From Magallana gigas (lineage: Eukaryota): DNA of 64,000 bases. A model generated the notes under the pieces. The model was not told where the DNA came from. It saw nothing but the letters and a program-made list of their open reading frames with translations, and searched no databases. Position numbers and translations under genes: made by a program. The stretch is taken from contig NC_088856.1 in the NCBI RefSeq assembly GCF_963853765.1, forward strand, positions 32,798,001 to 32,862,000, read 5' to 3'. Of this stretch, positions 12,601-60,000 are shown in pieces. Each line of letters begins with the position of its first letter. The stretch's first letter is position 1.

Positions 12601-15600
12601 ACAAGAGAGATTGATATGGCCATCCTTACTGCATGTTAAGCCCTCTTAAGCTTCAGAAACCTGAGTCATTCTTAATTGTTATTCCATTTAATACCTTGTT
12701 CATTGAAAAGGAAACACTTCTAAGATATTAATGTTTTTGTACAAAAAATTCAAGATCTCAAAAAAACCAAAATGATTCAATCTTTTAAAGTACAAATATC
12801 CTACCAATCGACTGGATTGGCAGATACATGCAGATAGATAGATAGGTAATTAATCTTTGATGTATGTGTTTATCAATAAAACATGAACTCTTACAGAGGT
12901 CTGTGAGTTGGCTATACACAGATAAAATATATTGACTTGGGGGCTTGGGTCAATGACACTATGACAGTCTACCATCATATCCTTCTGAAATACATCAGTG
13001 CACTCTGTTTAATACTGTTCACCTGGCAAAAAACCTCACCTAAAGATAAAAAAGCCAAATGGCTTTTACAGTTACCTAAGTACCGGTACATGTACGAGGG
13101 TCAATAAAAAAATACGAAGACAATGTGGCTGTCTATCATATATTTTTCAGTAAAGTCATAACTAACAGATTATATTAATGCAACATATTTATTTTATTGA
13201 TATACGAAGTTTCATTCCATTTGATGAAAAGGTATTTTTGTTATCCAATTTTAAAATCAACATGTTTTGTCACTACGGCGCACAGTAACTTTGAAAACAT
13301 TGGTCAAGGTTAATAGAAATATCCAATCTCTATATCACCCTGAGTCTTTTGTGCTTTTCACTATACAATTTAAATTGAGAATATTTCACTTGACATCTAA
13401 TTTGTTCACATTTGTTCGAAAATCATGAGTTAGTTCCTTGAAGTTTTTTTTATTTTTTACCGCATGTCTTCTCATTTACAGTAAGGAAATCCCTGAAAGT
13501 CAGATGACATTTATTTTTCAACCACATATTTGCAGACATTCTACTCTCTTTCGTATTGTTTAATGTTCAAAATACATTTACCACAACCCCCACAAAATGT
13601 GTTAGACTACAACACAAATGTGCAAATAATTTTTGACTTATTTTTTTACCCCCATTGAACATTTTCGCAGTTTTTATTTTTTCATTGCGCCGTGACATCT
13701 GGCGACTTCAATGTTTTTAGTTAATTTTAAAGAGGACTGTATGTCTTTAGTTACTGATGTCTGTTCAACATATCTGTATATCTCGTCATTACTTGGTACA
13801 TAGTATATCATGACTATTTTTGATTTTAGCTTACAATATTAGTTGGATTTAAGCCTAATTTATGGAGATATTACTTTTAACATATGATTTATTGTTGACA
13901 CAACACAAAGCCTGACCGTGCACCGTGAACTCGTTATTGCAGGATTAGATTCTATATAATTCTTAGAAATAAAGGAATATATTCATTTTTTTTTTTATTT
14001 TAAATTGTTTGAAACAATTGCTAAATTATGTCTACTGAATTTAGTACATGTTATATAATATGACGTTAAAAACCATAGCTACGGCAAAAGTCTTCATATT
14101 TTTTGATTGACCCTCGTATATTGGGAGGGATCCACAGGTTGCTGTTTATTAATAAGTATTTAATAAATCCAAAATAAACTAACTTATGTTTGAAATTTGT
14201 CGCTCAAAATCAAATAGGGAAGGTTTTCAAATCATTGTATTCCATAAAATTAGGTCAAGATGTAAAATTAAAATTTGATCGATTAATTTTCATGCTACTT
14301 GCACTATTTATTGGGTAAGTTGGTGTAATTGTGACCATTAATTATACATAGCATTTCAAAACCTGATCATACAGCCAAATAGCTCTAGATTTTTCTCTGA
14401 AAATAAGCAGTTCACTATCACTTTGTTCTAATTTCAAATGAAAACCCAAGAAAACAACCAAATTGAAAGCATATGCAACATTGTGATGCAGATTAACTTT
14501 GACCATATCTGAGGCTTCTTTAACTATCACAAAATAATTTCTTCTTCTCATCAAATCGATCAATTTCTGACTCAATCCATTCTCTTTTTTAATTATTATT
14601 TCAACAGGAAATGCAAAGAGAAGAAACTGAACTAACTGCAGTAGTTGATTGCCTAAAATATGATGATATTTTATGATAAATGCATATTGGGAATACTAAA
14701 AATAATTATCAATATTTTTTAAACTAAAAAATTTGAAATAAATTAAAAAGTGATCGAAATTAAAATAGCATACATGTGAATTAAAGTTAGCATGCCATAT
14801 GAAGTTTCAACAGTAAACAAACTTCGCAGTTGATGCTGACTGAAGTTAAATTAGGTTAATTAAGTTACATTAAAATGAAATGAATTTATTTCTAGTAATA
14901 CACAATTTGAAAAAAGTAAAAAAAAAACAAAACAAAAACATTTATTTGATATGAGGTTAAATTTTTTTGAAAGGGATTATGTTGTCTATTTTGTTTCTGC
15001 TCTGCCAAAGTAATTGATGTCATAATTTTTTAAAACAGAAATCACTGTGTTTGAATTGTAAAATTAAATATATGCCTATTTCCTGATATACTTGTAATTA
15101 GCAATAAAAAGATTTCTAACACTAAAACCGAGTTAACAAAAAACAGGACTGACAGACTGACAGACGGGTTAAAAGACATTTTACCAGAATTCCTTCTGTG
15201 GGGTATACTGAAAACATTGCATGCCTTTTCAAGGATTGTAGTTAAGAGTCTTTCCACTCATTTGATCATCTGCTACTATTAACTCCACATGTACAAAGTT
15301 AACATATAAATCTCGATCTAATACCTTGGCAATTTCTGTGCTAGATACAGGCTTGGCTTTCTTGGACATATCAAGAGAGATAAATCCGTCCATGGATCCC
15401 CCTCGTGCTAATTTGGGAGTCACATCTTTTGGATTCTGTGGACTTTCTAGGGAAGCTAGGCCACTCTGCCTGGACTTCCTTCTCCTGACCATGTCCTGCT
15501 TGTGTTGTTTGAGTAATTCAGCAGGGGATATTGATTGTATTTCCACTTTTTTGTCACCTGAGCAGTCTGCAAAACCAAGTATTGTTCAAACAAAACAAAC

Positions 15601-18600
15601 CTTTAACAATGAAAGTGGCACAAACGTTTTGTAAAGAGAGTGTATCAATCAAGAACTAACCTGTTTCTTTGGGATTTTCTTTCTTTACTAGATGCTTCAC
15701 AAAATTCAGAGACCCAACAGTAGGAGTAGCTAAAAGATCCACACTGAAATTACATAGGCTTTAATTAAACACAGGCTAACACAAATAACCATCACTTAAA
15801 AAGCAATATTTGTTACACATACACAACTTATTTGCAGACCAATCTGACTGATTTTTCTTCACCAAACATATCAAAACAAGAGATGTTTGCAAAACACTTA
15901 TGCCCCCCTCCCATAGAAACATCTGCGAAGAAAATGAACGGAAACTACAAATAATTGAAATTTTCTGAGTAGAAGGCACATAACTCTGTCAAAATTGCTT
16001 GAATACACCCAAAATAAAACTTGACCTAGATATCATTATGATAAACCTGTATACCAAATTTCATTTCAATATGTGCATCCTATGCAAAGAAAATGAACGG
16101 AAACTGCAAATAATTGGAGTTATTATATGTCCAAAGGGCATAGCTCTGTCGAAAATTGCTCGATCGCACCCAAAATCAAACTTGACCCAGATATAACATG
16201 TATTATGATAAACCTGTATAGGGTGATTTAACCATGCATCGGACACATACCTTGGATCGGACAACTTTGTTTATAAATATACAAATAAATGTGCATGCGC
16301 TCATGTGTTGTTTCGTATATTCCTGAATTAGAACAAATGAACTTTATCATTATTAAGAATTTGACAGTCACATTGTCAAAGAAATAGCAATATAGACATC
16401 GTAAAATGACATCAAATACGCCATTATTGAAAATTTAGTTACGAAGATTTTACACTAAAGCATGATTTGAATGTTGTGCGTTTGATTGTAAATTAGTGAA
16501 AATGCACTCTCTTCGTAAAATAATTAGAAAGAAGTAAGTTTTGAAACAAAATTTGATTAAAATAAGTCCAAGAAATTTGAACAATTAATGTCAAGGCCAT
16601 TATTGCACCATATCTTCATTTCACCATGGATCGGACACAAATTAACCATGCATCGGACAGTTTTCACTGCATGATTTCTTCTAATAATATGGAGATTATG
16701 TGCCCATTCCTTCTGATATACTTTAAATGTGAAGTAAAATAAAAATTCAAAAAATAATTGATACAAACATTTTCCTCAAACCACTTAAAAATCGAGTTTT
16801 ACGGACACACCATTTTTAGTCCAAAGTTCCTGTAGGAGCTGGCACGATAAAGAACCCCTTATGATAAATATTCCTTTAAACAGAAGCACTAGTCTTAATT
16901 CCTATATGTATATTTGAGGATTTACATTAAAAGAAATATGAATAGCAATTGAATAAATTAATATTTCCGAACTTTTGTATTTTTGCATTAAAACCAGAAA
17001 ATGTTGTTATTTTTAATCTCTACTGCACTGCTATAGCTGTCCGATGCTTGGTAAATATTGTCCGATCCATGGTGAAATAGTTCAACACTTCATTAATTTG
17101 CTTTATTTTCTACATTTTTAACAATTTCACAATTTTTTCTCCAATAATTAAGCAAGGGGAAAACCTGTACCTTTTAAAACAAGTTTTATTTATATTTGGA
17201 CGATATTTAATGCGTGAACAAAGGGAAAAATCCAAAGGTGTCCGATGCATGGTGAAATCACCCTAGCAAATTTCATTTCAATATGAGCATCCTTTGCGAA
17301 GAAAGTGAACGGAAACTGTTGGTGGACCAACCGACCGACAGACATCAGCAAAGCAATATGCCCTCCCTTCTTCGAAAGGGGGCATAATAAATTTCTTTCA
17401 TACATTTTAAAATTATCATGTCCAATATAATTTATTGTCTAGAATGAATTGGTTTGGCTGATGGCTTTCAATTGATAAACAATTGCAAAAAAATTAAAAT
17501 AGTTCATTCAACTGAACCTGATATTTATCAAATTTAGTGATAATTACATCCATAATCCAAGTGAAATCTGTAGTTTTTGCACAATGTTAATTTAAAACAT
17601 TTTTCATATGTTAACTTTAACTTTTTATGATGGTGGGTCAATAAAGAAAAAATCAGAAGTTGGACAATCTATCTGTTTACTGCAGAGCTTACAGGTCATT
17701 TTTTTTCTGCTCCAGTTGTCTGAGTTTCTCCTTGTCTGCCGGGTCAAGGTCGTGGAGGGACATGGTGGTGAACTTTCCCTGACTCTGTAGCTGCTTGGCC
17801 TGGAGCTTACTGACCGTCACCTGGTCCTTCTGGGACGCCTTCCTCCTACACAAACACACAAACTCAAAGTTTATATTTGATCTTCAATGGGTATTTCCAA
17901 AATAAAATAAATTACTATAAATACATTTAAACGAATGCTTGATGATATACTTTGTATTGGTAAATGTTTCCCCTCCATAGAAGAAAAGAGAGTCTTTGTT
18001 GTTCCTGCGTCCAAACACATGATTCTTAGGGGTGACTGCGGAGCTAAAACAAAACCATGATAAGTCACCTCGTTACACTATTCACATTGGACCCTTGCAA
18101 ACTAAGTGTTTATATATGTGAGATTGCTACATAGGACTGGTAGACAGACACTGTAAACTAAGTGTTTATATATGTGACGATTGCTATATAGGGCTGGTTG
18201 ACAGACACTGTAAACTAAGTGTTTATATACGTGACGATTGCTATATAGGACTGGTAGACAGACACTGTAAACTAAGTGTTTATAAACGTGACGATTGGTA
18301 TATAGGACTGGTAGACAGACACTGTAAACTAAGTGTTTATATACGTGACGATTGCTATATAGGACTGGTAGACAGACACTGTAAACTAAGTGTTTATATA
18401 CGTGACGATTGCTACATAGGACTGGTAGACAGACACTGTAAACTAAGTGTTTATATATGTGACGATTGATATATAGGACTGGTAGACAGACACTGTAAAC
18501 TAAGTGTTTATATACATGACGATTGCTATATAGGACTGGTAGACAGACACTGTAAACTAAGTGTTTATATACGTGACGATTGCTATAAAGGGCTGGTAGA

Positions 18601-21600
18601 CAGACACTGTAAACTAAGTGTTTATATACGTGACGATTGATATATAGGGCTGGTTGACAGACACTGTAAACTAAGTGTTTATATACGTGATGATTGATAT
18701 ATAGGACTGGTAGACAGACACTGTAAACTAAGTGTTTAAATATGTGACGATTGTTATATAGGACTGTTTATATATGTGACGATTGCTATATAGGACTGGT
18801 AGACAGACACTGTAAACTAAGTGTTTATATACGTGACGATTGCTATATAGGACTGGTAGACAGACACTGTAAACTAAATGTTTATATACGTGACGATTGA
18901 TATATAGGACTGGTAGACAGACACTGTAAACTAAGTGTTTAAATATGTGACGATTGTTATATAGGACTGTTTATATATGTGACGATTGCTACATAGGACT
19001 GGTAGACAGACACTGTAAACTAAGTGTTTATATACGTGACGATTGCTATATAGGACTGGTAGACAGACACTGTAAACTAAATGTTTATATACGTGACGAT
19101 TGCTACATAGGACTGGTAGACAGACACTGTAAACTAAGTGTTTATATACGTGACGATTGCTATATAGGACTGGTAGACAGACACTGTAAACTAAATGTTT
19201 ATATACGTGACGATTGCTATCTAGGACTGGTAGACAGACACTGTAAACTAAGTGTTTATATATGTGACGATTGATATATAGGACTGGTAGACAGACACTG
19301 TAAACTAAGTGTTTATATACGTGACGATTGCTATATAGGACTGGTAGACAGACACTGTAAACTAAGTGTTTATATACGTGACGATTGCTATATAGGGCTG
19401 GTAGACAGACACTGTAAACTAAGTGTTTATATATGTGACGATTGCTATATAGGGCTGGTAGACAGACACTGTAAACTAAGTGTTTATATATGTGACGATT
19501 GCTATATAGGGCTGGTAGACAGACACTGACCTTCCCTGGAGCTCCGTCCGCTTGGCACATGTTTTCTTGTAGGCTGACTGTACATGGTACACACAGAACT
19601 GCCCTTGTTCTCTAAAACCAATGACAATACAGTTAAATCAGACCTCCCTATGATACTCAATGATACTGCTTCACACACACACACACACACCAAGCACTCA
19701 CTTGTTGATGAAGTTGGTACAAGCCTTGCCCGCCTTGCTGACCCCAGCACACTTGCCTAGATCCTGGGAGTAGCCCATCATCATTATCTGGTTAGGATGG
19801 TTCACTGTGAAAGCCATGTCCTGCTGACCCTGGAAAATAAAGCATTGCTACTTGTATTGATAGACTAGACAAGATTTAGAAAACTTGTTTATTCCTATAT
19901 AGACTGGGGTGTACAAATAGATCTAGATGTACCTCTATAGACTGGAGTGTACAGATGTGTTCCATACCTTGTCTGCTTTGTCCATCTTGTTCGGGTTTAG
20001 AATGCCCACCACAGATTTGACCTCATTCTTCCAGTGCTGTTTAAACACCTCCCCGAATAAGAAGAAGCTAATAGTCTGATCGCAGTCATCCAGGTCACTC
20101 AGGCGCCAGATACAAAAGGACTTCCCCTAGATATGAGGTAGAGGGATAACTGTAAAAGTGGTTATTTACACGTGTGGGAAATTTACACTAGTTATGCGTA
20201 AAGCTTAAAACCGTGTAAAATACCCCACGTGTATGGTAAATAATTTAACACTCCAGTGTGGTCAATAATGCATCCGCTTATTTAATACTTACGCATACTG
20301 TTTGACCATAAAAATCGCGTTCTTAACCACCAGCGTAAAACGCCACTTTTACAGTATACAAAATCAAGCACAACACCGTGTATCTACCCTTTCTGGATTT
20401 TGTTACATGCCTACACATATTTTAAAGCTACAAACTATATCCACTCTTGGTATATCCTATACAACCAAGAGAAACGTTTTACTCACCGAGGATGAAGTCC
20501 GAGGCTCAGATTTATGTACAATGACCCCTACTGTCACCCAGTCTCCTTGTAATTCAGCACTTTTTAACTTAAGATGAATCTTGGATAGCTTAATTAGTTT
20601 CCTGTCTGCCATCTTGTATTTCATTTCCATGCTAGATATCTTTGGATTGCTTAAAAAAAAAGTACTTTGTATACAGCTATATGTATATACATGTAACAAC
20701 AAGGTTTAAGATAAATAAAGGTTTTAGAATGACAAAATTAAAAATTAAGTATCAAAATTACATAAAAATAATTTTTTATCTGATTTTTTTTTTCATTATG
20801 TAAAAAAACAAGCTCTGTTGCTACTAGACTTGCATAATAACACCAAAACTTGTCAACAAGGATCACTGGACAAAAATGAAATGTCAAAGTATGGATCCAA
20901 TGTCAACTTGAATTTAATAAAAACTTTTAACTTTATTAAACACATGCATTCAATGGACAAGCTCCTCCATTACATAGGCTACCAGGACAATGAATTCCTA
21001 CAGCCTCCCTGTCACTACGTTAACTGCTGGACAAATGTACTCACATTATTCTGATCCCTGAGAAAGGGTCTGTGATACTCTGATAATTCTCACTGCCATT
21101 CTTATGGGGTGGATTTACCATCTCCTGGCCGGGGAAAGGGCCAGTCTTCCCTGAAACAATTAATATCAATCCTTCACTAGATCTGTTGGCTATCTTTTTT
21201 TGGAGAGAATCGAAAACTGTAACCAGTGTATTGTATGCATGCAAGTTATAACTGCAAGATTCCCGAGAAACCTCCTCTCATGGAAGAATGAAATAAAACA
21301 AGTACTTACTCCAAGAAATCACTTTTTCTGGTTTTGTTATCAATTAGCCATTTGCGAATAAAACTCAATGTGTTTCATACCTGGTTTACATAGTACAGGT
21401 AAAACACACAATGAGGTGTAGGTATACAGTAGAGCTTACATGACTTGGACTTGAGGGCCTTCTGTCGGAGTGCCTTCACATCCTCCAGGGACGCCGAGGA
21501 CACCCTCTGGGAATCAGCTGTCTTCATCAAGTCATGGATAACTTGGCCTGATTCACTCAATCCTGGCTTTACATCTAATAATTTAAACTGAGATAAGCTG

Positions 21601-23707
21601 ACTGTATCCTATATGAATACTAGCAATAATTTGTGTAGGCCGGTAGATACCAAACTCAGTATTAACAAAGTAAAAGTACAAATACAAACCCCCATCCAGT
21701 TCCTCCCAATCACTGTCACTGTCCCCAAATAGCCCACTTGTCCCCTTACCCTCAGCCCCTGGGTCTGAACTGGCAAAGAAAGGATTTTCGTCTGTGCTGT
21801 CAATTGTTAGTTCTGGAATAAGGATAAAATTTGTCAATAACTTCTCAAGGGTGAAACATAAATAACCTGACTCAGGTTTTTGCTTGAAAAGAACAGAACT
21901 AATACACTACCTCTCTTATTTGACACCACTGATTTTGAGTCACTATTTGGAGACACTGTTTTGGAGATACTCTTTTCCCTTTTCTGTTTCTCTTTATTAT
22001 TTGGAAGGTTGAAACCATTTTTCATTTTCTTTTCTCCATTTCCAACACAGGTATTGGATGGCAACAATTTGTTTATACGTTGATGGCCTGCGAAGTTCTC
22101 TGGGTCCTTCCCTGTTTGAGATACTTCAGGAGTTACAGTCTGTTTTCTTGTCTGTGGCTGAGACATTTCTGAAGCTGGTGTTTGTTCCTCTTTCACTTTG
22201 AATGAGAGCTGATCTTCAGAGGTTTCTCCACCACTTTTTTTAGAGTCTAAATCCTTAGCAACCTCAGACTTCCCAGATGATGATAATTTTGAAGCATTCT
22301 TACTTTTTTTTCTCTTCTTTAGTTGAGATTGAAGTTCCAACATCTTCTTTTGAATATTCAAGAGCTCAGCTGATTAACAAAACAATTAAATTCAAATTAT
22401 AGATAGTTAGGTTTGAAACAGATTTATTTATGATAGTAGATAAAAATAATAAAGAAATTCAGAATTGCTTAATGACAGTGTTTTTACAAAGTACGACACC
22501 AATATTAAATCAAAGTAACATTCAGAGAGTTAAGTGTGTGAATAGAGGCGAGTCAGTCCCACATAATGGACATCAAAATCTTGACTCTATCAGAAACATC
22601 AGTGTTATATGCAAGGTGATGAGCCACCTTCACTTTACCCTGTATATCTGTGTCATCATTCGTGTCATCATCCGTCTCATCATCCTCTTCCTCTTCTTGC
22701 TCACTCATCTCATCAAGGGCAGTCCGAGATAAAGATGGCTCACACGGCTCACTTATCACAGTACAGGCAGGCTTGGACTGTGACGGCCCACTCCTTCCTT
22801 CAGACGGGGAGATGTCCTTGTTCCTTGATAATTTATTCCCAGTATCTCTTTCCTCAAAATCACCATCCTCCTCCAGAAAGGCTGCTAGGCTGTCAATGTC
22901 ACAATCCTCATCTGCAAAAATAAATCAACTTTGAAAATTCTTTACCGGGTAATTGTATTTGTTTTTGCTATTTTGTACTGGTAGTCTTATGTAATTTTTA
23001 AGCACTACCGGTATTTTAGTTGGTGTACAATGCTTTAGTAAATTAGTAAATACATACCCTAATTTCTATTTTTAATAAACCAAGAGAGAAAAAAGCAAAA
23101 TTAATGTAACATAACTCATGAGTATGCTTTCCCTTATAATTACATCTGCATCTCTTACCAGTCCAGTAACTACTAAACAATTAGATCCAGAAACATTTAA
23201 CTTGTTCAGCACATAACAATTTTGTGAATTCTTTAATCAACAAGACCTTCATTGGCTGGCTGTGGACCCTTGGTGAGGGTTGAACTCTGTGGACTATTTC
23301 CGTTCCCTTTTCCCACTGACTTATTGTCAGGTGGATCCCGTTGTTTTACATCTCCTGAATTACTATCGTCATCCAAAAGTGAAACTAAGACATCCAAGTC
23401 ACATTCATCTTCTACAAAAGTTTAAACCAATTTAATTCAAAGTATTCCCACAATTAATTGATATGTACATATGAAGATAACTACTATTGGTAACTTGAAC
23501 GCATATTTACAGATAGAGCCTTATTGATTTTATATACAAGTATGTAGCTATATAAATGTTTGCTAGCTGAACTTCATAAGTTTATTGTTATACAATCATT
23601 CAAAAGATTTATGATCATCGACATGTTTCAAAAGCATGTGTGAGATATGTCATATTTTCATGTTTACATGCAAGCATATAAAATAATAAAGAATACAAAC
23701 CTGACAT
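6644..23707 (-). CDS. MCM10: MCM10 DNA replication factor, 21 coding exons, about 1013 aa
   Basis: Phase-consistent GT-AG exons: 23701-23707 (caaaATG), 23247-23411, 22639-22911, 21911-22369, 21690-21812, 21440-21574, 21045-21150, 20487-20649, 19968-20126, 19702-19829, 19531-19611, 17951-18043, 17693-17845, 15661-15743, 15325-15566, 10609-10735, 9974-10113, 9311-9424, 8437-8582, 6833-6875, 6644-6745 (3042 nt). Motifs: OB fold (DWVTVGVI; [12 protein letters not shown]; SFFLFGEV), CCCH finger (DLGKC..CTNFIN..FCVYHVQ) and C-terminal zinc domain (KKEKYEDKM; RFFKCKHCG; [10 protein letters not shown]). Confidence 0.95.
7080..7380 (+). mobile_element. Degenerate pearl/Helentron-like non-autonomous element
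   Basis: Satellite-like core (ggtaatatgcacat), GAC(G/A)-type microsatellite and a decayed 3' hairpin; same family as 51130-51610. Confidence 0.45.
9435..9927. repeat. Minisatellite of 16/18-bp units (ACAGACACACAG[A]ATAA), intronic in MCM10
   Basis: About 29 directly visible units. Source of the spurious C/V/L-rich ORFs. Confidence 0.95.
10335..10625. repeat. Degenerate tandem array (about 22 bp) built from the MCM10 exon end plus splice donor
   Basis: Core TA(C)CTATGTTGGAT is repeated. Donor-bearing copies at 10370 and 10412; true donor at 10607-08. Confidence 0.8.
11304..11825. mobile_element. Kolobok-like non-autonomous DNA transposon (522 bp)
   Basis: TTAA on both flanks (11300-03, 11826-29); 22-bp TIR AGGGACYTRGACACAATTTGAG; RR..YY termini; internal 19-bp tandem at 11676-11762. 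Confidence 0.8.
11835..12640 (-). pseudogene. Decayed coding-like relic, possibly a LINE ORF2 endonuclease-RT linker
   Basis: One minus frame has only about 5 stops in about 270 codons, and GC is higher than the flanks. Resemblance to LINE ORF2 is weak and recalled ([15 protein letters not shown]). Confidence 0.3.
13095..14116. mobile_element. Mariner-like MITE (1022 bp)
   Basis: TA on both flanks; 27-bp TIR CGAGGGTCAATMAAAAAATAYGAAGAC with 2 mismatches; no transposase ORF. Confidence 0.88.
15875..17388 (+). mobile_element. Pearl/Helentron-like element with 159-167 bp core repeats, interrupted by a MITE
   Basis: 5' AACAAGAG..TATGCCCC; core units starting GAAAATGAACGGAAACT at 15930, 16089 and 17301; ACCG/ACAG microsatellite; 3' hairpin TATGCCCTCCCTTCTTCGAAAGGGGGCATA at 17357-17386. 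Confidence 0.8.
16221..17263. mobile_element. Tc1/mariner-type MITE (1043 bp), nested insertion
   Basis: TA target duplication; 26-bp TIR GGGTGATTTMACCATGCATCGGACAC with 1 mismatch. Removing it restores the host unit (ctgtata-(g/c)caaatttcattt). Confidence 0.9.
18104..19528. repeat. 57-bp minisatellite, about 25 copies, filling an MCM10 intron
   Basis: Unit ACAGACACTGTAAACTAAGTGTTTATATACGTGACGATTGCTATATAGGACTGGTAG; period measured at 18364 and 18421. Confidence 0.97.
20149..20355. mobile_element. Short MITE (207 bp), TIR ACTGTAAAAGTGG
   Basis: 13-bp inverted termini. A related inverted copy sits at about 53401-53620. Confidence 0.7.
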
Positions 23708-38400: not shown

Positions 38401-40080
38401 CTCTATGTATTGTGTTGAAGCGAATTGAAAATATCTAAATTAGCTGGATTGCAGGATGTGTTCCTCATAAAAAGCTGGGCCGGCACTGTCACAATGTTAA
38501 CTATTGAGGAGGTTATCCTGCCATTTAACCCTCCCATCACTGCTTTGTGAGAAAGAACAATCTTAACAATTACCCTGGTGCCTTACCCACTTCTTACAAC
38601 CTTTTTGAAAAGGAATCTAAGACAGTATGAAAATTCACTAAATTTGTTTGGGGTTTTTTTTTTAGCAATTCAAATTTTGTTTTATTAATTAAAAATCTGT
38701 CATTTTAACACCACAACAAATTGTTTTTCATAGGATTTCAATGCAATAATTCACAACATTATTCTCCAAGATGCAGACAAAATGACAAGATCTTGTCAAT
38801 TTGTCTGCATCTTGGAGAATAATGTTGTGAATTATTGCATTGAAATCCTATGAAAAACAATTTGTTTTGGTGTTAAAATATATTCATCAATTAACACATA
38901 TGGGTGAACAACAAAATATACTTACTTAGCATGATCCAATTTCTTGAATTTAAACATCAGTGGTGTTTTCATTATCACCACTCAAATGACAATTTAGCTC
39001 CCAATTAGCAATTAGCTGCTTCCAAACAGAAAATAATAAGACCTAACTATCCGCATCTCAGCAAACTTTAATGGAATGCAGCTATAGAAACTGTCTCTTT
39101 AAAAGAAAATGTAGATTTGTCCGTGAATTGAGTTTTGCAGACTTTGAGAAGTAATTGGAAGCTCTTCTAGGCAACACCTGCTGTTTGGCTCGCACCAGAG
39201 GGAGAGAGAGAGAGAAGCTGCCAATGGTCTATGGCCGACTCTGAAGGAAGCTGGAAGCATTTCCCTAGCCATTCATAAATCACAACAACCCATTCCATTA
39301 ATAGCTTTCCTGCACCAAGTCTGTTTCACTTTTGTTGGCAAATAGTGCAGAGAAATGGGACTGGATTGTGGAATTTTGGACAGATTTATTGGCACATGTG
39401 ATGGCACTATTTCATGTGATCCTCTCTTTAATTTAGTGAAAATTGTTTCCTACACGTAATTTCTCCCTAGTTTACAACAACTTTTTTTTAATTCAACCGA
39501 CCGAGCACAACTGCAAACATTGAAACAACACTTATGAATAGCAAATCATCAAGTCTCACTATTAGACTTTACTGAGCAAGGTTTTGGCAGTCGGCAGTGA
39601 GGCATCAATGGAGTGATAATAAACAGTTATTGAAAATATAGTGCATAGTCTCGTTTGATCTTTCAATTTAATAAGTGAAAACATCTGTACAAATACTGTG
39701 TTCATGGTTCAAAAGCCAGTGTGGGTTGACTAATTAAAACAGGACACTGTCCATATGGGTTTAATTCTTACATTTACTCTTTGATAGAGAACGTTCTTAA
39801 GATTGATCTCTCAAATTTAAACAGACTCAAATTTTTGGATCACCTAACTGATAATATCACATCGAAATCAAACATCATATCTCCCTCCCAAAACATGTCA
39901 GAAAAACTGATAACATAAGATAAATGAAGAACAAATGACCACACATTCTATTACAATTACATGTAACTCAAGATAACCTAACAGCACTATATTCTAAACA
40001 CTTTGTAATGAATAGTTTCCGACATGACTGATTGACATTTGAGCTCTCCATGAGTCTATTATCTTTTGGAATGGAAAGAT

Positions 40081-40112
<32 letters not shown>

Positions 40113-43080
40113 GATAAGAGTATTTGGCAAACTTGTGGTAAAATCAACTTGGAATCAGCAGTAAAACACAATACAAAACAGATCATATACAACTCAACAT
40201 CAGTCAACACTGCAACACAACGAGACAGATCATATACAACTCAACATCAGTCAACGCTGCAACACAACGAGACAGATCATATACAACTCAACATCAGTCA
40301 ACGCTGCAACACAACGAGACATACCCAACTTATTTTTACCCTTAGAATTACATGAAACACAGCTTAAAATTAAGTCATCAATTAATATTTTATATCCATT
40401 TTATCATTAAATATTACTGGCTGTACAAGCTAGTCTCGATCCCTTTAAATTGATAGATGCACAGGTATAGGTTTTATGTTTGTGTATAAGCTACACTTTC
40501 ATTTAACCAATCATATTGGCTTTTAAATAATTCAAACAAATACACAAGCGGGGATTTCAAATTAACATCTCCCCAAACTTATAAATATATCAATCAAAAT
40601 ATGTCTGGTTGACATCAGCATTTAATGCATTTTCTAACCAACCTGGAAAATCTAGAGAAAGATTTCCTTCTCTTCTGGAATCCTGGAAACTCCGGATTCC
40701 TGGTGCCCCCACTGAGGTAGGTTGGACAACACTCGGACTGTCCCTTCCTCCATGGATACAGGTTAGGCTGGGATTTGCTTCGGGATCGGAGGTTCTTCTG
40801 GACCGTCCGACATCCCGGACACAGGTCCTTCTGAGAGGCCCTCCTGCCGTAGTTCATGATATTCTTCATGTATGCGACCTTGTCAAAGGCCACAGTGTGA
40901 CGGCAAAGCCCACAGTGCTACCCTCAGAGGAGAGGACGCAACTCTTTGTCACTGTAATCCGCGAGTCAACACAGCACAAACATATAAAAGGTTCAGTCCA
41001 TTTCACCAGTACCTAACAATCACCCCCTAAATACAGAACCCCAAATCACTTAGGTTATGCTTTCAGCTGATAACAAATTATGGATATTTAAATTTGAACT
41101 TCTGTTTGCATTAAAGGACAAATTATCTCCACACAAAATCTCCTCTTTTTTGGCAATGTCAAGCCCCAGTGCTCCAAATATCACTTTATTGAGTGCTTTA
41201 AATCTGACATAAAAAATACAAGAAACTCCAGAAATATTGGTTTTCACTCCAATCCTTTATGATCTTTGATACCATGGCAGTGAAAACCAGAGTAGCTGTC
41301 CTAGCTGTAATGCAAATAGCCCAATGTCACCTCACACAAAGAGCGGCCAGGAAACTTTATACAGCAGTACTTGAATGCCCCTGGGCTGTCAGGCAATTGT
41401 ACTTAGGGCTTCACACCCTGTTGTAACACCCTCCAACACATCTAACACAGCAGCCAGACATAACTGCACCTGGACAAACTTTCATGTTTACCTCTTACAT
41501 AATCTTTATTTACAACAAATAATTTTTACAGCCCCCTGGTCATAAATCTCAACACTTGCACTGGGTGTCATAATTGCACTATTAGTTGTTTCTTTGATCT
41601 AGATTATAGACCAGCAATAAAGTTTAGGATTATCTAATGAAACACATGTTTAACAGGGCTAACACTATTGTACCTCACTAGTGTGTGATCATTGATCCAA
41701 AGTCATGTACATTTAATGTACCGTAATATTAAAGACAAATAAAAGGAACTGAAAAAATTGTTCCTGTATCCTTAACCTTGGTATTAAACATGTTATTAAA
41801 GATTCACACAAAGCAGTCATATAAATTATACTGTTAACAGGTAGTGCAACACGTAATGTGTGCACATAGTTACATTTCCCAGATGCCTCATATGGAATCA
41901 ATTGCTGCTCATAAAAAATAGCAAAATTAAAAGCCACTGCATTGAAAGGAGAGCAATCCTTTCAGACAACTGGCAAACTGACCTGTCAGCAATGGCCTCA
42001 ATATAACAATGAATGACGGAGTAAACATGACTTAATGTAACTATGTTAATTACCAGCAGTGTATCATAAAAAACTGCTATGATAAAATAAAAATAGGTGG
42101 TGAAATATTGAATTTTATATGCACCTTAAATAGTTGCCAACAGCTAGTGGTTATATAGCACTCTGAAAAATGTAAAGATAATAATACAGCAATTAAATAA
42201 TCTTAAAGAATTAACAAAACCCTTCAGAAAATCTTGCTGTCACACAAAGGAGCAATGAATGTAAGTGACAGGTAAAGATAATTAAGCCTTAAAATTTCAG
42301 GCAAAATCACTTATTATAGTGATTTAATTTTACGATTCTTGTTCTTTTATATAATTTATTCAGAGTTTACAATATAAAAAGGTTATATATCTAAAAAAAA
42401 TTTACTTCTCAGAATATGTGTACCAAGTACATATGAATTAGAATCAGAAAGCACATCGTTGAAAACCCATGGTCGTTCGCGCTTCTCTTACCTAAGAGTA
42501 ATGATGCAGAAAGCAGTACATGTAAACACTCTGTAAAAAAACATCCCTAAAGAAAAAGAATACAAATAACTTAAAAAACCCCAAACATTTCCTAAAGACA
42601 GAGGTGTTAATTAATGTTATTGTAACAGATAATCTTTATCATAAAGATCTTCCATTTTCCTGAAGCACACAAGTTACTTGATTAGTTGATTGCAAAATCA
42701 TTGAATATCAGTATTCGATCAGCAGTTATCTCTCTTTGCCCATTGTTCACTCATATTACTCTGCCTTCAACCCCAGCTCCAAATCAGGTGACACACAGAA
42801 TCAGTCTTTGCATTTCTATAAAACGTCTTACTGCTTATTCAACCGACTAACCAAATTTAAACTTAATAGTACAAGCTTAAAGGAAGTTATCAGAAAAACA
42901 GAAAATTGTTACTGGAGGAATGATCGACTGATTGGACCCTTATATTAGCTACGCATTACTTTACTTAGATTACATGGCACTAAATTTCTAAATGCACAAA
43001 CTTACGCCCATTAATGGTCTTCATTGCTGATCTTTACATTACACATATATCTAATCATATAACACATAAATGCTTAGTAG

Positions 43081-43146
<66 letters not shown>

Positions 43147-46100
43147 ATATTAAATGAAATCATTTTTATGCAAACCAAAAGAAAAGTAAATTTTTTTCAC
43201 TGCATGTGTATGTTCCCATTCATCTCTCAACATAGGAAAATAAATAGATCTCTTTATGCAAAATTAACCTTTAGAAATAGTTTCTATTCTTTTCTTGTGT
43301 TGGGAAAGTAACACATGTAGGATTTTTAGGGTGGCTTAATTCTCAGATCTCCATATTGACTATACAACTTAGGACGTCATTTAGCATCACTTATTCTGGT
43401 TTATGAGGACATCAGACTGCAGGTGTATCATTGTATGAAGCAATTAGCACGGTCTGGCAGGTCTGATGTGTTCAATACCATACAGCACAACAACGCCACA
43501 CACAGCGACTGATATTTTAAAATATCCCTTTCTATCATATTAATTTTGAAATCAATTAAGATCCCCAGAGGAAATACCATACATGTGCTCACTCATACAA
43601 GCATCATCATCGAGTCTGCAAAATTAATCCATTGATGTCATAGCAGTGTTGGTCTGGGGATTCCATTTTAAAAGTTGAAACAAAAGTCAAGAAACTGCTA
43701 ATTAAAGAGTCTACACATTTGAACAATAACAGACTTTACCGACTCTGGCTGGTATTCGCCAATAATTTTGTCATTATTTTCCCAATTATGATAATATAAT
43801 TGCTTCTGATGATCAACATATTTTTTGGTCTGGAGGGTGGATAATTTGTAAACTCTAATATTTCTCAAATCAAATTATAGGAATTTTAATCAAAACAGAT
43901 ATGATTGGTGTTCATTCTTTGTAACATTTCTTTATGATGTTAAATCTCAAACAAAATTATTTATGATATTATACACAGTTTATTTTAAATACTAAAATCC
44001 CCAAAACACATGTATTTTTTTTTTTATCACAATAGAATTTGTTTCATACCAAAGACTTGTATATTTCTGTGTATGTCTATAACCATGTGATAAATCAGAT
44101 TCTCTTCCTGATCATGACTTTCCTATTTACAATAGATGCTTCATGTCATCATTATAGAGGATTGAAGCATTTTGAACTAGAAAACTGACCAGTCAGGAAG
44201 GGCCCCGCTATGACAATTAATATAGAGAAGTGAAAAAAACTTTGAATTCCATCCTCTTTATATTAACAATGATGAAAAATAAATGCCCGGCAGAAGATGT
44301 AAAGAACTGGAATATATAGGATCTCGTGATTTGTAGTTGGATATGATTTTCATCCAACAATTAAAGTGTTTTTTTCTTGAGCCTTAGTGAGGGGATAAAA
44401 CACACAAGTTGGATAAAAATCATATTATACTACAAATCATGAGATTCTATTTATCCCATATTTTATACACCGCAATCAATGTTTACACTGTTTATAAAAC
44501 TCTACATTATTTTTACTTCATTATGCCTAGGCAAATCCCATTGTAAAGTCACAACTCTGGAATATCAAAAAAATATCCAATGAGTCATATCCACGGGATA
44601 AAGTGGGTTAACATGGGATGAAATAAAATTTGTTAAAAAAACAAAGAATTGATACCAATGCAATGATACCTAGGCTTTGCCTCTATTCAATAAAACTATC
44701 ATAAATCATTGTGTACGGTATTTTAACCCCAAAAAATATGAATATTATATTTCAAATCCATATTTCAAAGAATGTACACAATACTACACATCATTCAAAA
44801 TTGACCTTAACTTCAAAACAAAGTTCATTTGCAGACACAGGCAGTGCAGTAATTAATCTCAATGTGACAGATAAAGATAAAGCTTAGGATTTTCTTCCTG
44901 TGGAAGGTTAATTAATCCCAAAGGACAAATATTGCACAGCCTTCCATGTATACAATGGTAACATTCTCAGCAGTTATCTCTCTTTGCCCATTCATTCTCA
45001 GCAGTTATCTCTCTTTGCCCATTCTTCTTATGCATAGTTATGAATCTACCCCACCACCCCAGCTCCAAACCAGAAGACATAGAGAACCAAACTTAGCATC
45101 TAAATATGTATTTCTGCCTACTGAACTACCATACCAAATTTGAACTTGATTGGGCAACCATAAAAAAAGTTATTAGAAAAAAACAGGAAATTTGTGGACG
45201 GAAGAGTGACAGACGGACGGACGGACAGAAGGACGGACGGACAGAGTGATTACTATAGGGCACCCGCAAATCCTTGCGGGGCCCTAATTATCTTGAGATG
45301 GTTTTTAATTTATAGGGTGTCTCTTAAAATTATTGTATATCTTTAATTACATAAATTAATCAAAAGCTTCCTCAATTTCTGGAGTATTGGGTAATGATTG
45401 AGATTCACTTTGTCAACAAATGAACCATCATTGCAAACCTTTAAAATCAAGCTAAATAGGCAACCAGCTGAATAACACTTTGAAGAAGGAACATTTCAGT
45501 AAAAGTTGTCACATTAAAAATGTAGGTCTTAGTATCACAACACTAGAACAGATACCTCAATTTCTTTGTTAAACAGAATATGTATGATGTCTAATGATAG
45601 GTCTTAACATGCTATATAGGTCTTTACACGCTGTAGGTCTTTGCATACTGTATGTCTTAACATGCTGTAGGTCTTTACATGCTGTAGGTCTATTCATACT
45701 GTATGACTTTACACAAATTAGGTCTTTACATGCTGTAGGTCTTTAGACACTGTAGGTCTTTACATACTGTAGGGTTTACATACTCTAGGTCTTAACATGT
45801 TGTAGGTCTCTACCTACTGTAGGTCTTTACATGCTGTACATCTTTACATGCTGTAGGTCTTAGGTCTTTACATGCTGTAGTTCTTTACACACTTTAGGTC
45901 TTTACATGCTGTAGGTTTTTACATATAGTGTCAGACATCATTAAATCAACATCTAAAATATGGTAGTGTTAATCTCAATGTGCACTTCATTAAACACATG
46001 TACCAAATAAAACTGGCTAGAGAGAGAAAGATTTGTAACCAAACATACTAGAAAGTCCAATACTGTAATAAACTTCAACACTCTAAATCTGTGGATATTG

Positions 46101-47965
46101 CTCTTAGTTGAAGATTGAAAGTCGACTTACATGGTGCTGAAGAGAGCCATGTAGTCGGTGTCGCCAAGGTTCTCTGAGGTGATAAACTCATCCAACTTCT
46201 CTATCATTTCATTCTCAACCTACAAATAAACCCAAACACAAGTCAAACTTGGGTTCACACATGTTGTGTACATGGGATACAGGAATGTTTTATATCAGAG
46301 TGGTGACTGACCATCTGAAAGTTCCCACAGGTTTTCATCTCCGATTCCATCATGTCAAAGAAAATAGGGATGGTGGCTTTTCTCAGTTCTTCTTCTGGTA
46401 CCAGGGTCACCTTCAGGAAGGGGCCAATCAGAGATGGAATGAAATGGCGTCTGTTGGCTCCTAACAAGTTATAAGCAGAAATTATTAAACTGAATTTCCC
46501 TAAAAGAACATAACACTGTACAATGTTTCTTCGCCTTACTGACCCAAGTTCTCCCACAGTGTTTGTATCTGTTGTCCCATCAGGATCCGCATGTCTTGGT
46601 ACCTTTCCACAATCTTTTGTTTCTTGGCCTCCGAGTACATCTCTAGCTGTAGACTGGGTTGTGTGATGAATGCCACAGACAGATTGAAGTAGTGACTCCA
46701 TAGCTAAACACAAAGTTAGTCTCCATAACACATCCTTGTACATGTAATTGTAATATTATCAAGATGATCTTACAATTTCCTATTTGAATCCCAAGATGGT
46801 ACATGTATTAGCTTAGTTTATATGATGAAGAATTACAGGTTTGGAGAATTTTCAAAACCAACATACCAAAATTTAAGATATTAGAAAGAAATGACAAGAC
46901 CTTCTACTGTTTACATCCATAACAATATTTGTCATGTGATTTACCATATATAACAGCCTAGCACTGTATGCAAAATGGAAAAATAAAAACATGCAGTCTG
47001 GCTCCAATCTTTTTTTTCCCAGCAAATTTATTTGGCTAATTGTATATTTACAAAATTGATGAACAATAAGATTATAAGAAATAGTACTAGAAATCATGTC
47101 CAAGTCCACTTTGAAAATTCATGTCCATTTTATATAAACCAAATGATTGTCATTGAAAAAGACACGTACCTATACAAATATAATAAACATCACCGTTTGT
47201 GGGGATTTTGGGTTTTTAAAAAAAACTTTTAATGACCTATTTCATGAGCATTGAAGCATAAGTGGTATAGATATTTTTTGCTATATATTTTTGCATACAT
47301 TTGATAATAGAAAAGTTACCTGCTGGTTAAACTGATCCTTTTGGAGAAAGTGCTCACTTAATGCTGTTGACAGATATTCAATGGCAGTGAATAGTGCACT
47401 AGGAAAAGAGAGCATAAAATTATAGATAAATGAAGGATATAATGAATTAAAGAAATGGCCTATATACGTGTGCATTACTGACACACTATTGAGTTAAGTG
47501 ACATTAGAGAAGAGAGTTGGCAGTAGAGAGATACCTACTTATTAATCACCATCCTCATGACCGTCCAACCAGACGGGAACAGATCTTCTTTGATCAACTC
47601 ACGAAAAGTCAGCAGAACTTTCCCAAGAAAATCCTTTAAAAAACCTCAACGATTAGATGCAAGTTTGATATAAAATTATGGAGGGCGGCATCCTCACAAG
47701 GCTAAGGGAACCATTTCCAAAAGTATCAGAATTAATAGAGTACAAAATTATGTTGTGTTGGTCTGAACTGATAATGATTTCCATTAACATGTAAGCTCCA
47801 GATGTGAAGGAACAAAATTTTCCAATTGTTACATCTTTGTAATACTATTTATTTTAATCTTATCTTTTTGCCATGTAGGCTTTGTATTCTTGAAGGTGAT
47901 GTGAAATATTGATGTAATTATAGAGTTGAATAAACTTTGGACAGCCGAACTACTTTCCAAGGCCC

Positions 47966-57000: not shown

Positions 57001-60000
57001 TATCAAGTTTTTAATATGATAAAAAGAACTTTTTAATGACATAAGCTAATATAAATTACATGTGAAACTTTTCAATGAAAGAAACAAAAGTAAGGCTTTT
57101 TGCTTAATGGACTTTGTGAAGAAAATTCTTTACCAAAATATTTCGCTGCTCTTAACATGGGTTTCCTTATACATTTTAAATTTTTTTTTATGCTCAACTT
57201 GTAATGATTTTTTTTTTTTTAACATCATGTTGGCAAGTATCAAAGAAGTAAATGGGGTTATCTAGATTAATTCTTAATTGCACTGACGACTTAATACGAA
57301 ATGAACTATTTTGACCACACTTTACAAACTAAGCCTCTCTCTGTAAACTATGGCCATCATTTTCTGAGTATATTAAATCGAAGCTTGCCGTACTGGAATG
57401 TGGCGTCCTTCCTTGTCTAACACTGTCACTTTTACTTCCACATTTTTCTGAGCTTTTTTACCATCTCTATCAAAATCCCCCTCACGCAGTTCCAAGTACA
57501 CATCATTACGGACTTCCCCTGCACATCAAATGTTCAAAACACATGTACTTGATTAGTTTAAGATTTCTTTGGGTTTGGAGTAGTTTAACCCACAAGGCAT
57601 GCACTATTTAGCAGTCCACAACAGAGCATAAAACTTAAGATGCTTTACAATGTTGAACATATCATGGTAGCAGGTAAATCGTTAAAGTACTGTATATCCA
57701 TTTTTTTTGCATATCATAAACTTTGCTATAATGGGGTACATATGTAACCTTTTTATTTGCATCAAGATTAACAAATTTTTGCAATTTACAAACTTTCTAA
57801 TAGCAAACAATACTGGATATTATTTCTGCATATTGTGTTTTTTGCAATGCAGAATAAAGTTCTCACATAAAATAAAGAATCTATAGTATAGATATTTATA
57901 CATAGCTTGAGTCTTGGCACCGAATCTGATAGAGAATTATAAAACATTCAACATAATGTCCCATAATCAAATCTAATGAGGAATACCTAGTAAATGTATC
58001 CCAAAGACAAAAACTGTAGAAGGTAACACACACTTAAGCAATGGGTTTTAATCACAGGCAGGATGGGGTCTCCATTAAGCATTTTCTACAGCAAGCATCT
58101 ATTTATCTCACTTTTAAGATTAACATGATAGGAACGGGAATTTCTAAATAGCATTCAAACATGAACAATCAGATGTTTGAAGTAAAGCTATACCTGTCTC
58201 CTGAATATCATATGCTACACATATATGGGAATAACTGACAGATGACTACCCAGTACATTACTGTTGAACCATGCAGACATGAAAAATGAATGGATTCTTA
58301 GGTATGGATTATCACACATTTACATGTGGATGAAATGATGACCAATGCTCCCCACAGACCAATACAGCAAATATCATAATGCATTTTAAAGAAGAGCCCT
58401 GATGATCATTAAATGATAATCAATATAACTCCAAAGCAGACAACCAGTATTACCAGGGTTAATAACATCAGAGAAGTCCATTTTTTGTATCACAGCCAAT
58501 CCTTTGGTAAATAGCATGGGATGTTCAGTCTGACATTTTTTCAGGTCACCTGTGATGATTTTCACAGCCAGATGTAGACCTGTAAACAGAAAAAAAAAAT
58601 TCTTTATGCAAAGGCAAGGAAAACACTTGTAGGTGCACATAAAAAATAAAACAACTCACTAGATTTAATATTAGCTTCAAAAATATCTGAAATTAACAAT
58701 AATTCTTCATTCAGATTCATACCAAGACTTGCCCGTTCTGGATTTGATGCAGAAGCTTTGAGTTGGCTGGAACTGGCAGATGAGGATATACTATAACGTT
58801 TGATCAAGGATTCATGGAATTCTGAGAATATGCTGTCATCAGTACAGCTGTAATACAAACAATGTATTGTGTAATCAATTAAGTCACAAAAAACCATGAT
58901 CATATTTCACTGTCACTGCTGTTAGATGAATTGAACTTTTTTCAATGAGCTTTAATATTTTGTATATAAAAAGGATCACCTAATATTACCATCTCCACTC
59001 ACCTCACAACCTTTAAGTTACACTCATATAAATCATCTACAATGTCCATTTGTTCCTGAATTTCTCGAACACTTAACACTGAAAAGAATTGAGAAAATTC
59101 AGTATGTCTATTAACAATTTGTTTCTGTTGCTTGCATTTGTTTGTAGTTAGTAGTTTTGTACATGCATCTGTTTCGAGTTTACATAATACATCTACAACA
59201 TAAGTGTAATAGGGTGAAAATTGACAGTTATCATGATAGCAGCAAAGACTTCACATTTTTGAGATTCTGACCATCTGAAATGGCACAGGTTTCATAAAAG
59301 ACATAAGGATGGAACTAAGCTTTAATTAGTCTTTCACTTCTCTTATAGAAACAACAGCCCAAGGTCAAGGTCATCCTTCATTATACAACCACACAAAGAG
59401 TAATTAAAAAATATAGCAGATTGCGTCATAGGAGGAGATCATATTCACTAGAGATTAGCTATGACCTTGAAACTTGGTTTAATTTTGTGTTTAAGTATGA
59501 GCCAGATAGGGCCAAGGGAGAGAAAAATATGCTGCGGACATGATGATATAGGCATACCAACAAAATATGCTGCAGACATGATGACAGGCAGACCAACAAA
59601 ATATGCTTCAGAAATGATGATAGGCATACCAACAAAATATTCTGCAGAAATGATGATATTAGGCAGACCAACAAAATATGCTGTGGACACGATGACAGGC
59701 AGACCAACAAAATATGCTGCAGAAACGATGATAGGCAGACCAACAAAATATGCTGTGGACACGATGACAGGCAGACCAACAAAATATGCTGCAGAAATGA
59801 TGATAGGCAGACCAACAAAATATGCTGCAGAAATGATGATAGGCAGACCAACAAAATATGCTGTGGACACGATGACAGGCAGACCAACAACCCTAGCAGA
59901 CAGACTTTTCAATATACAGCCCCGAAAGTTGGGCCCAAAACCATCCTACCTCCAACCCCCCAGGGCCGTCTGTATGGTGATGTAAGGGGCTTCTTGTGTT

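Follow-up and report, generated by a model that had tools for sequence, protein, structure and literature searches.

DOCK proteins of the A and B subfamilies are guanine nucleotide exchange factors (GEFs) that adopt closed, autoinhibited states through intramolecular contacts, their N-terminal part and ELMO, and that are tuned by phosphorylation by Akt and PKA (PMC3967044, PMC7351999). Known sites include S1194 of Dock6 for Akt and S1250 of DOCK1 for PKA (PMC3967044). These GEFs are thought to act only as ELMO complexes which have been freed from autoinhibition at membranes. Short isoforms made from internal promoters are described for dystrophin, whose Dp260, Dp140 and Dp71 forms arise in this way (PMC7372313). 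In the literature searched, we found no description of a natural DOCK isoform reduced to the DHR-2 domain, and the review by Laurin and Cote makes no mention of isoforms, which is no proof of their absence. Here we examine a DOCK-A/B-type gene of the oyster Magallana gigas encoded on the minus strand of a 64,000-nucleotide stretch of contig NC_088856.1 (positions 32,798,001 to 32,862,000), which we call the window and to which all positions refer; exon coordinates are given on the minus strand. One intron of this gene carries two conserved alternative 5' exons, designated 1b and 1c, which give the same truncation with different heads.

The intron that hosts both exons (46130-37877) lies just before the DHR-2-coding exons. 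With the canonical upstream exon ending at 46131 and the shared acceptor exon starting at 37876, the intron measures 8,254 nucleotides, in keeping with the 8.25 kb given in a preliminary description of this DNA. That description had proposed a leader open reading frame (ORF) in a GC-rich island, ending at AG|GTTGGT, joining exon 37778-37876 in frame and preceded by an in-frame TAG; the coordinates and the frame were reproduced in our analysis. The leader of exon 1b (40869-40643) begins with an ATG at 40869-40867 and comprises 75 codons and two further nucleotides (AG), followed by the donor GT at 40642-40641, while the TAG stands at 40920-40918. The stop-to-stop frame around it (40917-40618, 100 codons) is the longest within the intron among the ORFs listed (at least 35 codons and a GC fraction of at least 0.40), and joining the leader to exon 37876-37778 keeps the frame open. 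Positions 40650-40949 have a GC fraction of 0.53, compared with about 0.29-0.40 on either side. Exon 1b therefore has its own start codon, an in-frame stop upstream and a frame shared with the downstream exons, and such stops are present in all three species compared, TGA replacing TAG in the two relatives. A match to a high-copy repeat had been named as grounds for rejecting the proposal and was looked for; the 1b stretch is instead single copy at both the DNA and the protein level in its own 564-Mb assembly, and is thus not a repeat. These results confirm that the observation was correct and that the ORF is not due to chance.

Splicing of exon 1b was visible in contigs of four public runs (X2, X8, X11 and X14), from four studies, which were mapped to positions 37760-43050. 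The predicted joint between 40643 and 37876, with GT..AG ends, was present in X8, X2 and X11, that is in three studies and under two organism labels. The contigs carrying it extend over 40643-41057 (X8), 40643-41341 (X11) and 40643-41704 (X2), with a minimal exon of 41060-40643, and each continues for 28-30 nucleotides into the shared exon (37876-37847). Side lengths of this order would fit unitigs with a word size of about 31 which meet a branch with the canonical isoform, the word size being assumed from the 31-letter words of the index. The canonical junction itself is represented by a loose end at 37876 with a match to 46131-46160. No joint, loose end or acceptor marking an upstream entry into the 1b block was found in the contigs of any of the four runs, and the upstream ends of the 1b contigs are clean, without foreign letters. 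In X2 the intron flanks of the block (40061-40591 and 41831-42361) are uncovered, so that the block has the coverage of an exon; in X8 only the 1b block and the shared exon were covered in the stretch examined.

Relatives of the leader were sought exhaustively and without profiles among 1.84 billion representative proteins. There were two real matches, P0001 (97% identical) and P0002 (64% identical), both of them ORFs called on unspliced Logan contigs from related organisms (L008; L002-L007). These entries and P0008 are prokaryote-style calls on unspliced eukaryotic contigs in which TGA was translated instead of being treated as a stop; the first 55-58 residues are therefore artefactual, and the entries are flagged 'translates to query: no'. 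A search with the 100-residue open frame returned only the unspliced ORF calls P0008 and P0001, from the same or close species. No homologous protein was found with the 75-residue leader, a null result that carries little weight because only proteins of 41-131 residues were candidates. Conservation of the ORF and of the donor in related species had been a point on which the initial proposal could fail; in both L008 and L002 an in-frame stop lies upstream of the same ATG, and the ATG, the frame and the AG|GT are kept.

Substitutions within the leader follow the codons. Between the window and L008 there are nine substitutions, seven of them synonymous, distributed 2/0/7 over the three codon positions (p=0.008 for the third-position excess), with a dN/dS (ratio of non-synonymous to synonymous change) of 0.07 and a dS of 0.158. 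The 65-68 substitutions relative to the more distant L002 are distributed 15/15/35 when aligned by codon and 17/15/36 when aligned by nucleotide (p=0.0007), with a dN/dS of 0.14 and a dS of about 1.6, and the two indels comprise whole codons (+3 and -2). The block upstream of the leader is equally conserved, yet its substitutions are spread evenly over the three positions with no codon periodicity. The third-position bias and low dN/dS next to a flat non-coding flank argue that 1b is a translated alternative first exon. Comparison of the sequences thus indicates that the leader is under purifying selection at the protein level, which excludes a purely non-coding exon. Peptides read through the donor diverge at once between species (e.g. 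RFVGLQMIIP...), and conservation ends a few bases past the AG|GT; because conservation of both sequence and frame halts at a splice site which is itself kept, we conclude that the donor is used.

The leader peptide is strongly basic, with an isoelectric point of 10.8, 17 lysines and arginines against three acidic residues, 12 serines and threonines and a net charge of about +14. It has no Pfam match, and a protein-level search of its own genome found no paralogue. The RSxSxP, RxRxxS and RRxS strings reported in the preliminary description are all present and are conserved in the distant relative L002. Within the stretch RSRSKSQP, which is identical in L002, the Akt-type string R28-x-R30-x-x-S33 and the mode-1 14-3-3 string RSxpSxP (R30-S-K-S33-Q-P35) share S33. 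The stretch RRKSFSR, with the PKA-type RRKS70 that forms part of KRRKS, is likewise identical, and a further RRxS site reads GRRASQKDL (RRAS12) in the window and GRRTSQKDL in L002, with the serine kept. The pair CC at residues 47-48 is LC in L002. Retention of RSRSKSQP and RRKS across a synonymous divergence above 1 indicates that they matter to the protein; a role of KRRK as a polybasic lipid anchor or as a signal resembling those for nuclear localization would fit the data equally well.

Upstream of the leader ORF, non-coding conservation is highest in a block at 41300-41000 that has promoter-like characteristics. Its identity to L008 is 95-100% (intron background 80-88%) and to L002 74-86% (background about 50%), and both a CCAAT (41240-41236) and a TATA-like TTTAAATA (41092-41085) are invariant across the species compared. 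The cleanest contig, that of X8, ends at about 41057-41060, approximately 30 nucleotides downstream of the TATA-like string, a position that is consistent with a transcription start there without proving it. We infer a promoter role for this block. Two tiny upstream ORFs lie between about 41060 and the 1b ATG. The second of these (40983-40966; ATG-TTT-GTG-CTG-TGT-TGA, MFVLC*) comprises five codons and a stop, shares the frame of the main ORF, has an identical counterpart in L008, reads MLVLC* in L002 and may be a translational control element.

The preliminary description had claimed a single hidden first exon; exon 1b bears this out, and a second conserved first exon, 1c, had been overlooked. 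Its conserved part spans 39325-38926, and a joint between 38926 and 37876, with GT..AG ends and the perfect donor AA|GTAAGT, was found in X2 and X14, in which the 1c contigs reach 39945 and 39766, respectively. An ATG at 38972-38970 is in frame and provides 15 residues and a split lysine codon, giving a 16-residue leader, before which the frame reads TGA-GTG-GTG-ATA-ATG. From the ATG region to the donor 52 of 56 nucleotides are identical in L002, in which the stop before the ATG is also kept, and a highly conserved non-coding block (39315-39170) lies upstream of the leader. A 43-codon ORF within the conserved part of 1c (39298-39167) was rejected as coding, since its third codon is a stop in the relative. 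The 1c block is single copy in the genome, and a repeat origin is thus ruled out for this stretch as for 1b. At least two first exons should be added to the gene models of this locus.

Some contigs also cover intron sequence next to the shared exon. Unspliced contigs of X2, X14 and X11 run from inside this exon (37876-37849) into the intron up to about 38300-38590. The intron closes in frame with ATG-ATC-AAA-TTC-TTT-CAT-AG, whose ATG (37896) also occurs in the distant relative, where the peptide is MVKFFH. The unspliced cover at 37877-38600 could represent a retained intron, pre-mRNA or a third start. Further into the intron, ORFs at 38721-38822 on the plus strand and 38759-38860 on the minus strand encode a nearly identical 33-residue peptide, which indicates an inverted repeat of about 140 nucleotides resembling a hairpin or a miniature inverted-repeat transposable element; cover by RNA contigs falls at this repeat (38721-38860).

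What the two first exons would be attached to can be read from the remainder of the gene. The shared acceptor exon (37876-37778) is common to the canonical upstream exon, 1b and 1c, as indicated by the two joints and the loose end, and the next exon begins at 36755. Exons from there to 26407 encode lobes A, B and C of DHR-2 and a proline-rich C-terminal tail (PPLPPRKP...PPPIPQR) which terminates near 26410. Pfam models of lobes A, B and C match exons between 34036 and 30635 with 25.4, 23.9 and 22.2 bits, each just below the cut-off of 26 bits because introns divide the domain. The exon 34036-33707 matches DOCK2 and DOCK5 in the PDB (E 5e-17 to 2.5e-16) and is thereby recognized as DHR-2; within it, 34012-33770 aligns to residues 1208-1301 of DOCK2 (6TGB), equivalent to residues 17-110 of the 3B13 DHR-2 construct (E 5e-17). 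The shared and the following exon contribute 53 residues before the NFYKDN of lobe A, which aligns to DOCK2 1208-1214 at residue 17 of 3B13, so that about 36 residues separate the leader junction from the start of the crystallised DHR-2. The 32-residue shared exon gave no significant match in the PDB, and the placing of the junction at about DOCK2 residue 1155 therefore rests on counting back from NFYKDN.

The layout of DHR-2 plus tail that had been predicted for the short product is supported, since lobes A-C and the proline-rich tail all lie downstream of 1b. We obtained a length of about 810-825 residues from a crude ab initio exon chain corrected with three DHR-2 exons seen by eye; the uncorrected chain chose one wrong exon and skipped those three, and it serves for approximate length only. 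This range agrees with the 820 residues proposed previously, the exact figure not being reproduced. The short isoforms should retain all of DHR-2 together with the proline-rich tail, everything N-terminal to these being lost, and the locus is best read as giving a short DHR-2-plus-tail isoform from an internal start.

We therefore propose, with a probability of roughly 0.8, that the intron contains an internal transcription unit in which exon 1b is spliced to the shared exon to yield a short DOCK product of about 820 residues. Transcription would begin inside the intron, near the TATA-like string at about 41060 and further upstream in some samples; exon 1b, with its own start codon and 75 leader codons, would splice to 37876-37778, and the transcript would continue through all of the DHR-2 exons. 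The predicted protein would consist of a basic, probably disordered and serine-rich leader, the last TPR/ARM helices, a complete DHR-2 and the proline-rich tail, and would be without the SH3/ELMO-binding end, DHR-1 and most of the ARM region. Exon 1c, with its donor at 38926, would lead to the same truncation behind its 16-residue leader. An isoform beginning just before DHR-2 could presumably neither be closed via the N-terminus and ELMO nor be targeted by DHR-1 and ELMO, and so would be a GEF free of SH3/ELMO autoinhibition. The conserved leader is a natural candidate for the control or targeting of such an isoform, and the conserved R-S-R-S-K-S33-Q-P and RRKS sites may bring it under control by basophilic kinases and of the 14-3-3 type. 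ELMO independence, Rac-GEF activity and regulation by Akt, PKA or 14-3-3 are predictions. A wider proposal is that two dedicated internal promoters, kept across deeply diverged relatives, make Rac GEFs which consist of the catalytic half and escape SH3/ELMO autoinhibition, with the longer leader substituting a switch, of the phosphoserine/14-3-3 kind or based on charge, at the invariant sites RSRSKS33QP and RRKS70, and that this constitutes a second, ELMO-independent mode of DOCK-A/B regulation. We regard this as possible and on balance doubtful.

A number of observations weigh against the proposal of a short isoform made from exon 1b. Only X8 is RNA by its record, the other three runs being guessed to be RNA; yet spliced contigs at a locus present once in the genome speak for RNA in these as well. 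Assembled contigs, from which all of the RNA evidence comes, can reveal neither the transcription start of 1b nor a full-length molecule, strand or abundance. The 1b-specific contigs end 28-30 nucleotides into the shared exon, so that continuation into DHR-2 is assumed. Much of the intron is thinly covered in X2, X11 and above all X14, which suggests pre-mRNA, and an X14 contig (40377-41344) crosses the 1b donor unspliced. The start codon context (TACATGA) is weak, and an exon reaching 41704, as in X2, would place 14 upstream ATGs in the 5' leader. Translation of the leader is supported by sequence comparison, and the protein searches found no relatives of it beyond two species. Among the motifs, the CxxC of the preliminary description is present as CPGC in the window and in L008 and is not conserved, reading HPDC in L002, and the residue at +1 to S33 is Q. 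Akt prefers a hydrophobic residue at this position.

Other explanations for exon 1b were considered. It might be a cassette 'poison' exon, the canonical exon end at 46131 being spliced to an acceptor that escaped detection before the TAG at 40920, such that nonsense-mediated decay tunes the level of full-length DOCK. Conserved intronic exons bearing stops are a known regulatory device, an in-frame stop does precede the 1b ATG, and contigs cannot show where transcripts start. This explanation is nevertheless very improbable, because the contigs of all four runs lack any joint or loose end entering from upstream and just end, at about 41060, 41341 and 41704, and because the start codon is conserved and the codon-periodic substitutions with a dN/dS of 0.07-0.14 from the ATG to the donor would be unexpected in an untranslated exon. 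Alternatively, an independent small-protein gene could be nested in the intron, using an unspliced 92-codon frame through the donor, with the DOCK splice as a minor by-product. The X14 contig that runs unspliced across the donor and the unspliced ORF listed by public gene callers (P0001, P0002 and P0008) would fit such a gene. Conservation of sequence and frame, however, ends at the donor and the read-through tails differ, whereas the AG|GT is conserved and the splice is seen in three runs; furthermore, X14 covers nearly the whole intron, so that its unspliced contig looks like pre-mRNA or DNA. We consider a nested gene the least probable of the explanations.

A different kind of alternative accepts that the short protein is made and denies that it is an autonomous GEF gated by phosphorylation. 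It could act as a modulator or dominant negative by dimerising with full-length DOCK through lobe A, possibly failing to reach the membrane, or its KRRK leader could be a lipid-binding or nuclear-targeting signal. In DOCK180, DHR-1 and ELMO are needed for localisation and lobe A of DHR-2 mediates dimerisation; the oyster product would retain lobe A, and the net charge of the leader suits binding to lipids or nuclear targeting. The conserved serines nevertheless lie within the basic patches, and the two ideas may be true together, for instance if phosphorylation switched a basic membrane anchor. The data do not separate this alternative from a phosphorylation-gated GEF, and we rate it as tentative, with the odds somewhat against it. 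The short DHR-2-plus-tail isoform from an internal start is common to the two, and it is this isoform that we favour.

The window contains no N, and the remaining exons are in keeping with a gene of the DOCK-A/B type, the 5' end of which may lie outside the window. The canonical upstream exons, which encode the end of the TPR/ARM region and are missing from the short isoforms, occupy 46485-46131, the exon end being taken from the loose contig end. At least one intron lies inside this interval, as the exon ending at 46131 and the frame 46258-46755 sit in different stop-free blocks. The Pfam model PF23554 (TPR_DOCK) scores 77.7 bits (cut-off 27) on 46255-46743, at profile positions 438-497 of 524, and further exons that match TPR_DOCK were found upstream, which places these exons in the TPR/ARM region. 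A genome-wide search with the Pfam lobe A model, in which only the best candidates were scored, did not have the DOCK locus among those listed. Between subtypes A and B, the lobe-A sequence looks tentatively more like DOCK3/4. Several repeats lie in or beside the introns: a tandem array with periods of 35, 73 and 115 nucleotides (37409-37784) abuts the donor side of exon 37778, and the host intron contains a 47-nucleotide unit repeated 3.1 times with 98% identity (40178-40321), a 17-nucleotide unit repeated 18.8 times (45598-45924) and a (CT)30 run (43083-43143). A long frame at 59451-59945 on the minus strand is built of a repeated unit, and none of the three frames of that strand is closed there; it resembles a minisatellite within an upstream intron of DOCK rather than an exon. 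Beyond the DOCK stop, at 15232-23421, additional minus-strand open frames of acidic and serine-rich character probably belong to a neighbouring gene.

Truncated isoforms from alternative first exons are common, and the structural claim made here for DOCK is solid, and the regulatory story is a proposal. A natural isoform with little beyond DHR-2 would be expected to be unrestrained unless otherwise controlled, and the invariant basic, serine-rich leader is an obvious candidate for this. If the protein exists and is active, it would provide a natural system for examining the need in vivo for the N-terminal half of DOCK and for asking whether the DOCK genes of other animals have comparable internal starts. 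The oyster gene shares its TPR/ARM region, DHR-2 lobes A-C and proline-rich tail with the described DOCK-A/B GEFs (DOCK1/2/5 and DOCK3/4; the closest solved chains are DOCK2, 3B13/6TGB, and DOCK5, 7DPA), whereas its short isoform would be without the SH3, ELMO-binding, DHR-1 and ARM parts that define their known regulation (PMC7351999, PMC3967044). As in phospho-regulated DOCKs, strings for basophilic kinases (RxRxxS and RRxS) stand near or in the catalytic half, but known DOCK phosphosites lie in the body of full-length proteins and the oyster strings, which are putative sites, lie in an isoform-specific leader (PMC3967044). The arrangement resembles that of dystrophin, with unique intronic first exons spliced to shared exons, several starts per gene, short unique heads and N-terminal truncation (PMC7372313), although the gene family differs. 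In domain content the predicted product is nearly equal to the DHR-2-only laboratory constructs of DOCK180 and DOCK2 (e.g. 3B13). The oyster truncation, however, would be a natural one that stems from a conserved first exon, and the conserved basic leader of 75 residues (1b) or the leader of 16 residues (1c) which it would carry is present in none of these constructs.

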